Sequence record: MZ444140.1
Length of the DNA: 64,000 nt
Strand: one strand, 5' to 3'
The position numbers and the translations under genes are program-made. How positions within the stretch are numbered: the stretch's first letter is position 1; each line of letters begins with the position of its first letter. The notes under the pieces were generated by a model. That model was not told the origin of the DNA. It searched no databases and saw only the letters and a list, made by a program, of their open reading frames with translations. Below, piece after piece: positions 28,191 through 34,778 of this stretch.

Positions 28191-30434
28191 TCACGGCTTA
28201 AGATCAGCAAGCTTACCGTTGAACTGAGTTTCACCCATGACTTTCTGGAAGCCAGTGATCTTGAACTCTAGCGCGAACGGAATGTTGTTGACGTGTAGGT
28301 TGAACGGAATGGCCGCGATTTCGCGAGTAACCTGGTGACCACCACGAGTGATCGGTAGGTCAGCGATAACAGTAGATACGTAGAAGAACTGACCCCAGGA
28401 GAGGATGTCGTTTTCTTGTTGTACTGCGCGGGTCGGAATTACAACTAGCTTACCATCAAATAGCTGGTTGTTGGTGGAAACGATATCGTACTTGAGATAA
28501 GCACCTAGAGTACGGTCGTCACCTTTAGTCATTAGATAGTTAGCAATCTCTTTGTCGGAGCAGAAGAGATACATCGGAGTTTCATCCTGGTTACCGGAGA
28601 TAACACGGAAGGCAGCTTCAATGTTGGAATCACGGTGAGCCGGGAATAGCTCAGCTTTAACACAGTTTAGGATCGCAGCGCAAACGTCGTCCCAACGATC
28701 TTTAGACTTGATGGTGTCGATGACTTTCTCAAGATCTAGTTCTTTGTAACGATAGGTCGGACGCATTACAGCGGATAGTGCACCTTCGATGATACCAAAC
28801 TTCGGACGGTTGTAACCATTGTGTACAACTTCACGTAGTTGAGCAAGGTAGTTAAGCATGCGCTTAACAGCGTTGTTGCTGTTACGGATGTTGGTGTTAA
28901 CAGTTAGAGCTTTAACAACCTCACCCGGACCTTCATCGGTCATGGTGTCCATCGGTAGAGTTACAGGAGCGTGCATCGGGATCGGATGACGGAACTGTAG
29001 CGCACGGGTCTGTAGTAGGTGACCACGCTGACGACGGTTAGTGTTGGTGAAGCGAGTGTCTAGTTCGAAACCGATAACCGCTAGGTCAGTTAGCTGATCT
29101 AGAATAGCTTTAACAGCCGGGTCAGCATTATCCATTACCTGACCATCTTCGTTTAGAACTTTATCGACGTAAGTGTCGGTAGCACCAAACTTAGAATCGC
29201 CTTTGGATAGGCTGATTGTACCACCAAAACCAACGCTTAGACGTAGGCTTAGTTTAGCGGTCTTAAGATCATTGATAACACCGTCAGCTGAACCATCGAT
29301 GAAAGTGGTATCGCCACTAACAACTAGATCGTCGCTATCGAAACGGATAACAGCGTTCCGGGTATCACCAACTAGATCGGGCTGGAACACAGCGCGAGGT
29401 AGACGGTCAACCTTGAACTTAACAACTTTACCACCGAGTAGAACGAATAGGTTCTTTAGACGACCAGCCGGATCAATGGTGTCAGAAACTTCAAGCATGC
29501 CACGCTGGATGAGTAGGTTAGCATTGGAGTTACCCATTAGATCAAGACGTACGTTCGCTTTTAGCGGAGCAGTAGTGATAGTTAGGTTCTGCTCGTTCTT
29601 GATGGTGTACGGAGGAACAAGAGCCGGGTCTACGAAGAAATCAGCATTGGAGCCAGCCGGATCTAGGGCAGGAATTAGCGCAATGCTTTCGTCGTCGAGG
29701 ATGGAAGGATCACGATAGGCTTCTACCATGTTCACTTCTTCATTATCCATCTTAACGCCGGATACTTCGTGGTAAACGTCTTTCATTACAGCGATGTAAG
29801 GAAGAACCTGAACAACACCACCTTCAATCGGGTTGATAACGGTGGTCGGATAAATACGCTCAGCGAATTCATCTTGACGGCTAGCAGCTAGGTTATAACC
29901 AATAGTTACAACACGGAAATCACGCTGTGACTTCTCGTTATAGTTCTCTAGGCCAACACCATTTTCGAATACTTGAATGCCACCAGCAGGGCCATTGAAC
30001 TGATGCTGTACAACCTTAACATGATCTTCATTAGAAGCTTTAGCTTTGGTAATACCACGTAGTGCACGGATATATTTAGTTTCATCAGCACAGGCGATAG
30101 CAGCCATGGTAGCAGCAGTGATTTGGTTCTCACGGACACGTTCTTCACGAGCACGTACTTGAGGATCACTGGAACTTACTCGTTCGAAACCATAGTCGTT
30201 AACGAGCATTTGCATTTTGTTATAAATTGCAGCGGCATCTTGAATGTCGGTAGCTTGCACGGTACCGAAGTTTTCATGTGAAATGCTGCTAATAAGGGAA
30301 CGACCTTGACTAACAACGCTGTCATTTAGACCAATTTCACTTTCTAGGCGGCCAATGAAATCTTCCATTGAGAAGACTTCGTAATTCTTTTCGCCTTTGT
30401 GTTTAAACAGTTCTCTTAGGGCATGTACGCTCAT
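28191..30434 (-). CDS. gp120: Major capsid protein (phiKZ gp120 ortholog)
   Basis: 747 aa; strong codon bias; prohead-protease-type site VGLE|NYNE; length and position match phiKZ gp120. Confidence 0.93.
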   Translation of the reverse strand: MSVHALRELFKHKGEKNYEVFSMEDFIGRLESEIGLNDSVVSQGRSLISSISHENFGTVQATDIQDAAAIYNKMQMLVNDYGFERVSSSDPQVRAREERVRENQITAATMAAIACADETKYIRALRGITKAKASNEDHVKVVQHQFNGPAGGIQVFENGVGLENYNEKSQRDFRVVTIGYNLAASRQDEFAERIYPTTVINPIEGGVVQVLPYIAVMKDVYHEVSGVKMDNEEVNMVEAYRDPSILDDESIALIPALDPAGSNADFFVDPALVPPYTIKNEQNLTITTAPLKANVRLDLMGNSNANLLIQRGMLEVSDTIDPAGRLKNLFVLLGGKVVKFKVDRLPRAVFQPDLVGDTRNAVIRFDSDDLVVSGDTTFIDGSADGVINDLKTAKLSLRLSVGFGGTISLSKGDSKFGATDTYVDKVLNEDGQVMDNADPAVKAILDQLTDLAVIGFELDTRFTNTNRRQRGHLLQTRALQFRHPIPMHAPVTLPMDTMTDEGPGEVVKALTVNTNIRNSNNAVKRMLNYLAQLREVVHNGYNRPKFGIIEGALSAVMRPTYRYKELDLEKVIDTIKSKDRWDDVCAAILNCVKAELFPAHRDSNIEAAFRVISGNQDETPMYLFCSDKEIANYLMTKGDDRTLGAYLKYDIVSTNNQLFDGKLVVIPTRAVQQENDILSWGQFFYVSTVIADLPITRGGHQVTREIAAIPFNLHVNNIPFALEFKITGFQKVMGETQFNGKLADLKP

Positions 30435-33151: not shown

Positions 33152-33388
33152 ATGTACTATGGTAATGTTTATATTATCTTTATTGGTGGTTTATTAATAT
33201 TTATCCTAGGATTGGTATTTGGAGGAATACTGGGAGAAGAGAACAATAACGTATATAAACTCAAATCCCAACAATTTGAATACTGCGTTAAAAATAAACA
33301 ATCAAAAAATAATGACAGTGAAAATATCCAAGTTATTAAAGTATGCGCAGAGTCTATTGTACTCCTATATCCGACTAATGAAAAATAA
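33152..33388 (+). CDS. Small membrane protein
   Basis: 78 aa; N-terminal TM VYIIFIGGLLIFILGLVFGGIL. Confidence 0.65.
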   Translation: MYYGNVYIIFIGGLLIFILGLVFGGILGEENNNVYKLKSQQFEYCVKNKQSKNNDSENIQVIKVCAESIVLLYPTNEK

Positions 33389-33395
33389 AGCATTT

Positions 33396-33415
33396 AAGCC
33401 CTCATAGGAGGGCTT
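33396..33415 (+). terminator. Intrinsic terminator
   Basis: AAGCCCTC-ATAG-GAGGGCTT followed by TTATG. Confidence 0.8.
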
Positions 33416-33420
33416 TTATG

Positions 33421-34000
33421 TCGTATGGCTAATATGCTAGTGAATAACGAATAAAATCGATTATAGAGCAAATTAGAAGGTATTAAAGGCATAAAGAAAG
33501 TCTATCTCTAGACTTATTATTTTTAATTAAAAAAAAATATAATCTATACTGTGTCTCCTTTTAGGGAGACAGTATGTATTAGCTAACGCTATTAGAATAA
33601 TGCTAATATTGTTTATTATTAGAATAAGGATATACCTTCGGTATAGTTTATTATGAAATAAAAGCCCCTACGGGGCGATCCGATTCCTCAGTTCCACATT
33701 AGGTAAGATTCATGAGTAATATTTGATTACCAGTATTACTCAATGATACTGGTAATAATATACTAGATTATTAACAATATGTATTGATCATTCTGATTAA
33801 GTCAAATTAGTTAATAAACAAATCAATTATCAACGAGTGATAACGGGTATTGATTACTAGCTAAAGAGATTAATTAGGATATCTACATGAGGAGTCGCTA
33901 CCCCATGTATTCTGGAGTTTCTCTTTAGCGGGAGACTTAACTCCACTTGGGAGCCGCTTTAGCGGGCGGCTCTCACTTAAACAAAAAAAGAATTCAGATA
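33421..34000. other. ~580 bp non-coding, hairpin-dense region (ncRNA or origin candidate)
   Basis: No ORF in the track; flanked by terminators of convergent genes; at least 8 inverted repeats; very AT-rich left half. Confidence 0.6.
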
Positions 34001-34003
34001 AGT

Positions 34004-34023
34004 CCCTCTCCTTTAGGAGAGGG
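34004..34023 (-). terminator. Intrinsic terminator
   Basis: CCCTCTCC-TTTA-GGAGAGGG. Confidence 0.75.
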
Positions 34024-34031
34024 GTTGTTTA

Positions 34032-34337
34032 TCATAGGCTTCTCCTTTCGGTTACATAGAACTTCTTCTGATCCATGTCAGTGTATGTTACTATGAAATT
34101 GTCGAAGGGGTTGATGGATACGGCTAAACCTGCGTTGTTGACGTATCCTATTGTAGGGCCAGCCCAATAACCAATGAAGTTACCTCTACGATCTCGACAT
34201 TGGATAACATTATCGGCTTGCGTTTTCGCAACCGACATGCTATGGGTTGATCCATCGGGTCTCTTGAAAAAGAAACCTACTTCCTGCATTCTGTGCAGGT
34301 CAGGGCTAACATTGTTAGCGGTAACTGGAATTAACAT
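34032..34337 (-). CDS. Hypothetical protein
   Basis: 101 aa; AGAGG RBS. Confidence 0.7.
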   Translation of the reverse strand: MLIPVTANNVSPDLHRMQEVGFFFKRPDGSTHSMSVAKTQADNVIQCRDRRGNFIGYWAGPTIGYVNNAGLAVSINPFDNFIVTYTDMDQKKFYVTERRSL

Positions 34338-34405
34338 GATTGTTCCTCTTGTTAATCCAAGCCCACTTGGGCGAAAATGTTGAGTATTTTTTACTCAACG
34401 GCATA

Positions 34406-34433
34406 TAGCCCTACTGCTGTAACAGTAGGGCTA
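34406..34433. terminator. Hairpin (terminator or regulatory)
   Basis: TAGCCCTACTG-CTGTAA-CAGTAGGGCTA 11-bp stem. Confidence 0.55.
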
Positions 34434-34468
34434 ATTCTTTTATTCTTAAAAGTTTAACTGAATAAATG

Positions 34469-34488
34469 CCCTCTCCCGAAGGAGAGGG
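34469..34488 (-). terminator. Intrinsic terminator
   Basis: CCCTCTCC-CGAA-GGAGAGGG (UUCG loop on the minus strand). Confidence 0.75.
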
Positions 34489-34502
34489 ATTATGTCGTTA
34501 AT

Positions 34503-34778
34503 TTATTTAACCAGCGATGTTTCCCTAACACGAGAGATGCATAAATAATTACTGTAATCGCTGGGGTCGTACTCATCATACCCTAGACAACTTGTATGAA
34601 TATATTCAGTACTGATATTAATCATATCAAGAGTAATACCATCACCCCATTTCTTAGTTGCCATCTCGATAATATCGGCGATAGTATTGGCTACATAACA
34701 ATCACCCAAGATATAAAAGGTATCTTCGGTATCATCCGGACGAAAATGACGAATACCATTCTGTGTATATTCACCCAT
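34503..34778 (-). CDS. Hypothetical protein
   Basis: 91 aa; GAGG RBS. Confidence 0.7.
   Translation of the reverse strand: MGEYTQNGIRHFRPDDTEDTFYILGDCYVANTIADIIEMATKKWGDGITLDMINISTEYIHTSCLGYDEYDPSDYSNYLCISRVRETSLVK

Follow-up and report, generated by a model that had tools for sequence, protein, structure and literature searches.

The gene-free stretch behind the phiKZ helicase operon holds a published leader-derived RNA and a mostly silent, AT-rich spacer

The hairpin-rich, gene-free stretch of a 64,000-nucleotide DNA sequence (record MZ444140.1; hereafter the window, with positions counted from its first letter) separates the DnaB-like helicase operon of the jumbo phage phiKZ from its p40/p39 transcription unit. 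Its right half, 33781-33978, is the already published phiKZ ncRNA '5'UTR_p40' (TU089) and therefore no new entity. Taken together, published coordinates, public RNA data and predicted folding make it probable that a phage promoter here drives a leader of four stem-loops with a partial stop at 33978 and a 715-nt read-through transcript, the left half being an AT-rich, mostly silent spacer. The features on which this reading draws are collected in Table 1.

Results

Genomic context of the spacer

The window is a Phikzvirus genome: phiKZ, fnug and PA7 share 99.9-100% identity with it over the gene-free stretch, and a blastn search with 33300-34100 returned 47 full-length matches at 97-100% identity, all of them to phiKZ-type Pseudomonas phages (100% in fnug, PA7 and KEN51; 99.9% in the phiKZ reference). 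The + strand of the window is the minus strand of phiKZ; subtracting a window coordinate from 148703 gives the phiKZ coordinate for positions right of 33529, where a poly-A run differs by 1 nt, and 148702 takes the place of 148703 for positions left of it, and genome-wide comparisons were based on the phiKZ reference record. According to the phiKZ reference annotation, the left neighbour is PHIKZ117.3 (p41; 33152-33388, +), which closes the operon after the DnaB-like helicase (p43) and p42, while the right neighbour is PHIKZ117.2 (p40; 34075-34170, +), followed by p39 (34174-34383, +).

Some observations concern the flanking genes themselves. The small membrane-protein-like gene PHIKZ117.3 looks dispensable when the relatives are compared, because a ~196-nt deletion in phage U1B (33167-33362) removes it, and OMKO1, SL2, fMGyn-Pae01 and phi9_PA9 lack the first 70 nt of the 33300-34100 query. 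The helicase ORF has been given two starts, ATG 31180 (515 aa, many relatives' annotations) and 31252 (491 aa, phiKZ RefSeq); the extra N-terminal codons of the 31180 start are conserved in PS119XW-type phages, where the tblastn alignment begins at residue 1. Within the major head protein gene, a 58-nt segment (29810-29867) is 98% identical to PS119XW, compared with ~64% gene-wide.

An earlier note on this DNA, made from the letters of the sequence, had singled out the stretch as the only large gene-free region, with an AT-rich left half and many inverted repeats, and this description proved accurate. A six-frame scan of the 64 kb for ORFs of at least 50 aa gave 33408-34031 (624 nt) as the largest gene-free stretch, the runner-up measuring 315-383 nt. 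The GC content of 33421-33780 is 28.6%, against 37.6% for the window, a value among the lowest 0.4-2% of windows genome-wide that is equalled or undercut at ~30 other phiKZ loci. All of the inverted repeats are present (33498-33515, 33546-33575, 33664-33676, 33713-33756, 33821-33855, 33884-33909, 33914-33944 and 33948-33975), two of which (33821-33855 and 33914-33944) are helices of the minimum-energy fold, and the 10-bp long-range pair 33860-69/33920-29 is exact. Measured against dinucleotide shuffles, the fold z-scores were -5.6 (+) and -4.4 (-) for 33781-33980, and -3.0 (+) and -4.7 (-) for 33423-33780. When 2,554 windows of 200 nt were scanned, 33851-34050 (+) ranked 8th for folding, and each of the + strand windows in 33351-34100 lay within approximately the top 11%.

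Table 1. Coordinates of features in and around the gene-free stretch (window positions)
Feature	Position	Strand	Basis or remark
Helicase-operon terminator after PHIKZ117.3/p41	33398-33422	+	GC hairpin then TTTTATG, 'hairpin + TTAT' motif; adapter-joined RNA 3' ends at 33422
AT-rich spacer, 28.6% GC	33423-33780	none	No published start or end site
7-bp palindrome AAGTCTA-TCTC-TAGACTT	33498-33515	none	Read from sequence
Hairpin, terminator-like on - strand (then T-run)	33546-33575	none	No transcript end mapped there
Two tandem copies of ~30-nt unit (TATTAGAATAA...GTTTATTAT)	33590-33654	none	Repeat search
Conserved element	33607-33715 (core 33611-33669, 58 nt, 90% identity)	none	Pawinskivirus match, same genomic position
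GC hairpin GCCCC-GTA-GGGGC then TTTTATTT, terminator-like	33664-33676	-	Sequence
Quasi-palindrome, 20-nt arms, 9-nt loop	33717-33765	none	Overlaps -64 to -16 of the ncRNA promoter
Promoter P060	33761-33781	+	TACT 33761-33764 (~-20) after A-rich run; TATG 33778-33781, G = +1
ncRNA '5'UTR_p40' (TU089), four stem-loops	33781-33978	+	Grad-seq, Northern, published coordinates, fold, RNA coverage
Read-through transcript TU088, 715 nt, covers p40 and p39	33781-34496	+	Published tables, RNA contigs
ncRNA stem 1, long imperfect hairpin	33786-33883	+	Predicted fold
ncRNA stem 2	33884-33909	+	Predicted fold
ncRNA stem 3	33913-33945	+	Predicted fold
ncRNA stem 4, 12-bp GC-rich hairpin	33948-33975	+	RNA ends 3 nt past stem 4
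13-codon mini-ORF MRSRYPMYSGVSL	33887-33928	+	AGGA 8 nt upstream; within stems 2 and 3
Terminator-like hairpin CCCTCTCC-TTTA-GGAGAGGG	34004-34031	none	+ strand then GTTGTTTAT; - strand then ACTTAT...T7
Two-way terminator hairpin, meeting point of both transcription directions	34469-34496		+ end 34496 (T051), - end 34464 (T052)

The right half is the published ncRNA

Using Grad-seq of phiKZ-infected PAO1, Gerovac et al. (mBio 2021, PMC8545117) described a ~180-nt ncRNA that forms the first part of the p40 5' UTR; a Northern blot bore this out and also showed a longer, mRNA-like species, and in the gradient the ncRNA sedimented unlike phage mRNAs, in RNA polymerase-associated and 30S fractions. 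The sequence of the Northern probe JVO-18831, once reverse-complemented, equals window 33820-33848, which places the RNA on the + strand. The ONT-cappable-seq supplement of Putzeys et al. (bioRxiv 10.1101/2023.10.13.562163; PMC10914365) lists the P060 TSS at 114922(-) as a 'middle promoter', found also in Wicke et al. 2021, and an end site T053 at 114725(-) with a blank type field, not classed as intrinsic. From these tables come TU089 (197 nt, no gene) and TU088 (715 nt, to T051 at 114207, spanning p40 and p39), and Table S7 of the same study carries the entry '5'UTR-derived, PHIKZ_p40, 197 nt, Northern blots, Grad-seq' with an MFE of -65.10.

Conversion of the published positions gives window 33781 (the G of TATG 33778-81) for 114922, 33978 for 114725 and 34496 for 114207, and the start at 33781 was also obtained independently of the published table, from the T(-3)ATG(+1) rule. 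The window RNA and TU089 are the same in genome, strand, start, end and fold energy, with the Northern probe lying inside, so that the right half shows no difference from the published ncRNA, whereas the left half is not discussed by Gerovac et al. 2021 or Putzeys et al. 2024. The main object has accordingly been in print since 2021 and was refined in 2024. The 'structured ncRNA' that the earlier note had offered as one reading of the whole region holds for the right ~200 nt on the + strand (33781-33978), where it is both published and seen in public RNA runs.

P060 has the make-up of a promoter of the phiKZ non-virion RNA polymerase, with the T(-3)ATG(+1) consensus that overlaps the start site of phiKZ promoters (PMC7598289, PMC7618050) and TACT ~20 nt upstream after an A-rich run; the phiKZ middle-promoter motif has been described separately (PMC8244752).

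Public RNA data agree with one promoter and two RNA ends. Contigs assembled from these runs carry no strand, which was taken from the Northern probe and the published tables. A 2018 run yielded a contig from 33786 to beyond 34500 with nothing at 33402-33785, and a 2021 run a contig of 33797-34474, while a 2024 run contained adapter-joined ends at 33422 and 34496. Nanopore cDNA depth was 0 at 33464-33750, rose to 34-39 thousand at 33792-33914, fell stepwise across 33915-34037 and stayed at 3-4 thousand beyond 34038; by this measure the short RNA is ~10 times as abundant as the read-through to 34496 (short:long RNA ~10:1).

Fold and conservation of the ncRNA

The minimum free energy of 33781-33980 (+) was -65.1 kcal/mol, equal to the published value, and the + strand of this segment folds more stably than the - strand by ~10 kcal/mol. 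Stems 3 and 4 of the predicted fold carry the identical tip CUU-UAGC-GGG. The sequence is nearly invariant across the 47 Phikzvirus genomes. For covariation, which the earlier note had proposed as a check on structure, the relatives are too alike (97-100% identical) to put the fold to a real test: the 197-nt ncRNA has seven variable sites, one a U-G to C-G change in stem 1 and the others unpaired or mildly disruptive. A search of the whole window against Rfam gave no match at the gathering score and, at E up to 10, chance-level matches alone, with no 6S RNA among them; ARAGORN found no tRNA or tmRNA in the window.

The long-range helix 33860-69/33920-29 is a near-isoenergetic alternative to the minimum-energy fold (+2.5 kcal/mol) that leaves stem 4 intact. 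A terminator/antiterminator switch was considered and rejected, since the long-range helix spares stem 4 and pairing of 33860-66 with stem 4 costs ~20 kcal/mol.

Terminators and transcript ends around the spacer

Intrinsic terminators of the phiKZ type consist of a GC hairpin followed by TTAT (Putzeys et al., PMC10914365). The hairpins at 33398-33422 and 34469-34496 have this form together with mapped RNA ends, and that at 34004-34031 matches the motif. Stem 4 of the ncRNA is followed by CUUAAAC, which is neither TTAT nor a U-run. The stretch had been described as insulated, with terminators on both sides, and this was borne out on the left, where the + strand hairpin 33398-33415 is a real terminator with RNA 3' ends at 33422. 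On the right it needs correction: the hairpin 34004-34023 lies inside the + strand transcript, in the leader of the + strand unit and not at the end of a leftward gene, and the two directions of transcription meet farther on, at 34464/34496. The hairpin 34004-34031 is homologous to the one that closes the PS119XW spacer, and RNA depth in a public run drops further across it, while the published end-site table calls no site there. When other copies of the region were sought in the phiKZ genome, the terminator hairpin alone recurred.

Farther to the right, no 200-nt windows in the 64 kb fold more strongly, on either strand, than those of 34251-34550 (z ~-4.7); this segment is a two-way terminator cluster (34406-34433 and 34469-34488) where the p40/p39 unit meets the PHIKZ116 operon. 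The published tables place two gene-less transcripts nearby, the 249-nt TU087 from a late promoter inside p39 (window 34247, +) and the 76-nt TU086 at the PHIKZ116 end (window 34540, -).

The left half and a conserved element

Three of the four public runs examined showed no RNA coverage over the left half, and the published tables hold no start or end site in it. It is contained in RNA contigs of two 2024 studies, contigs that carry neither strand nor depth and whose simplest reading is read-through past 33422; the left half is thus mostly, not strictly, silent. An early promoter was also sought in it and rejected, since the early motif from the published tables, AAACAGTATATTAC, is matched only in part and the 2018 run shows no RNA there.

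Part of the left half is shared with another genus. By blastn, eight Pawinskivirus records (PA1C, PS119XW, BRkr and others) matched 33611-33669 at 90% identity and nothing else in the query. In PS119XW the matching sequence occupies the equivalent position, within a spacer of 417 nt that follows the helicase operon. For comparison, the helicase DNA is 63% identical between this phage and PS119XW, and no 58-nt helicase window exceeds 81%. Within the element, the hairpin TATACC-TTC-GGTATA is changed to AATACC/GGTATT in PS119XW, a compensatory T-A to A-T replacement; altogether the left-half element has two compensatory pairs between the two genera, both of which date from one and the same lineage split. 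There is one copy of the element, and it contains no conserved ORF. PS119XW has the same two-copy repeat layout, the unit TATTAGAATAA being found nowhere else in the phiKZ genome by genome counts, and it keeps the position of the GC hairpin 33664-33676 with a different stem sequence.

The element was not found in the Psa21, Noxifer and Phabio genomes, and scans of IMG/VR (with two patterns) and of metagenome contigs gave one match, to a PA7-type genome. No discussion of it was found in the published work searched. The ncRNA module (~33716-33980) is missing in PS119XW, which, on the alignment of the two spacers, would make the module an insertion or deletion relative to the shared spacer.

Two palindrome loops vary by inversion. 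The loop of the quasi-palindrome (33737-33745) reads TACTCAATG in some relatives, while FBPa36, 30-1, PA02 and Wadjak 2 carry CATTGAGTA, which is exactly its reverse complement, and the loop of the terminator hairpin (34013-34014) changes from TTTA to TAAA in 124.01 and Wadjak 2. Such inversions are the pattern to be expected if palindromes fold back on themselves in DNA.

Discussion

A promoter of the phage RNA polymerase starts the + strand transcript at 33781, and the first 197 nt of this transcript fold into the four predicted stem-loops. Approximately nine in ten molecules end at 33978, just past the fourth hairpin, and give the abundant, stable ncRNA, whereas about one in ten pass a second hairpin (34004-34023) and reach the terminator at 34496, yielding the 715-nt RNA with p40 and p39. 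We propose that the structured leader in this way carries its own partial stop, which would hold down expression of the downstream unit and set free a stable RNA. The 3' end at 33978 could arise from polymerase-specific early termination, or the RNA could be cut in the A-rich linker, stem 4 then protecting it from exonucleases; processing is as likely as termination, because T053 is not classed as intrinsic and the sequence after stem 4 is that of neither a TTAT-type nor a U-run terminator. As phiKZ transcription takes place inside a protein 'nucleus', away from ribosomes, ribosome-coupled attenuation is implausible, and the stop would have to come from the structure of the RNA or from a factor inside the nucleus. 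A 2026 review speaks of no more than 'potential roles' for the ncRNA. Furthermore, the name 'leader of p40' may be a misnomer as judged from the downstream reading frames, since neither p40 nor p39 has a Shine-Dalgarno sequence and the codon usage of both is poor.

Other readings of the right half assign the RNA a different main purpose. It may be chiefly a trans-acting regulator or a protein sponge, the early stop existing in order to make it and the duplicated hairpin tips binding protein. The tenfold excess over read-through, the sedimentation apart from phage mRNAs (PMC8545117), the duplication of the tip motif and the near-invariance of the sequence in the 47 genomes all fit such a role; but the RNA has no known target or partner, the rest of the phiKZ genome shows no enrichment of the tip motif, no Rfam family, 6S RNA included, matches even at E up to 10, and Pawinskivirus lacks the whole module, which would make it dispensable in that lineage, so that we regard a mainly trans-acting role as possible but rather doubtful. 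It is far less credible, indeed extremely unlikely, that the ncRNA is a small mRNA for the 13-aa peptide of Table 1: although AGGA precedes the ATG by 8 nt and the RNA partly co-sediments with 30S subunits (PMC8545117), the start codon is buried in stem 2 of the predicted fold and codon 9 varies non-synonymously between near-identical relatives. The coding strand to the right of the spacer also bears on the matter, as the long + strand RNA would be antisense to a 101-aa - strand ORF (34337-34032, the former gene 117) if that ORF is real and p40 and p39 are shadow ORFs. In favour of the ORF are a good ribosome-binding site (AAGAGGA, 6 nt upstream of its ATG), a hairpin and T-run directly after its stop codon, a PHROG family and a call in at least 9 of the 12 relatives' annotations examined; its codon-usage score is 0.03, compared with -0.13 for p40/p39, and the homologous hairpin of PS119XW lies at the end of a - strand gene. 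Against this, in the ONT-cappable-seq map the - strand RNAs stop at 34464 and the longest read extends to 34401, so that + strand transcripts alone are mapped over the 101-aa ORF, which has no start site; the phiKZ reference annotation has PHIKZ117.1 and 117.2 on the other strand and no gene 117; and the ORF has no homologues outside the genus, nor does its protein resemble that of the PS119XW gene in the corresponding place. The third codon positions of the two frames coincide, which makes substitution pattern and codon usage indecisive between the 101-aa ORF and p40/p39: substitutions are 50% synonymous in both, and the codon-score gap is 2 sd below the normal sense-antisense gap. We consider an antisense RNA to a genuine - strand gene unlikely, and retain the partially stopped leader of the p40/p39 unit as the reading of the right half.

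For the left half, the earlier note had raised a replication origin, a single-strand initiation site or a genome-organising element, none of which gained positive support. An origin or initiation site in ~33423-33780, with the repeats and hairpins serving a phage initiator or primase, would suit the adjoining DnaB-like helicase operon, the low GC content, the two tandem ~30-nt repeats unique in the genome and the hairpins, which are denser than chance on both strands; the loop inversion of the 33717-65 palindrome is consistent with a DNA hairpin forming during replication, the 58-nt core is closer to its Pawinskivirus counterpart than the helicase gene is, and no origin of phiKZ is described in the literature searched. 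On the other hand, the cumulative GC skew over 280 kb climbs steadily, without an extremum or turn at 114.7-115.3 kb, though skew in phages mostly follows transcription. In Psa21, Noxifer and Phabio the order of the capsid and helicase genes is preserved, yet spacer and element are both missing, the helicase operon being followed by ~50-nt gaps in Psa21 and Noxifer and by co-directional genes in Phabio. The low GC content recurs at the ~30 other loci mentioned above, the repeat is present in two copies alone where iteron origins have several, and no initiator gene is recognisable nearby, the neighbouring small proteins being without recognisable function. An origin here is consequently very improbable in our judgement. 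Much the same low expectation applies to the conserved element 33607-33715 taken by itself as a cis-acting sequence, be it a replication start of nucleus-forming P. aeruginosa jumbo phages or a genome-organising binding site. The AT-rich, mostly silent spacer remains our preferred description of the left half.

Because phiKZ-type phages are candidates for therapy and serve as models of the phage nucleus, the identification of an origin or of a regulatory RNA would be of use, although neither is shown here. The questions that the region raises are what the 197-nt RNA does, how a phage polymerase comes to stop early in a ribosome-free compartment, and why two genera have kept a 58-nt non-coding block more alike than the adjacent replicative helicase gene.

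Iteron-type origins combine several (usually three or more) direct repeats with an unwinding element and an initiator gene beside them, whereas the left half has two copies of an 11-16-nt repeat and no recognisable initiator among its neighbours. At oriF and oriG of phage T4, the RNA of a middle promoter primes replication at an adjacent unwinding element. The phiKZ spacer likewise has a middle-type promoter beside AT-rich DNA and close to replication genes; here, however, transcription from the promoter leaves out the AT-rich DNA, which lies upstream, and the transcript is free, abundant and folded. Compared with the intrinsic terminators of phiKZ, the hairpin that ends the ncRNA (33948-33975) has CTTAA in place of TTAT and is not classed as intrinsic. 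A further likeness is to small RNAs derived from 5' UTRs by early termination, as in attenuator and riboswitch leaders, which share with this RNA a single promoter, an abundant short structured product with a strong hairpin at its 3' end and a minor full-length mRNA; the phiKZ leader differs from them in having no evident ligand-binding or alternative terminator/antiterminator fold and no U-run, and in a setting that makes coupling to ribosomes implausible.
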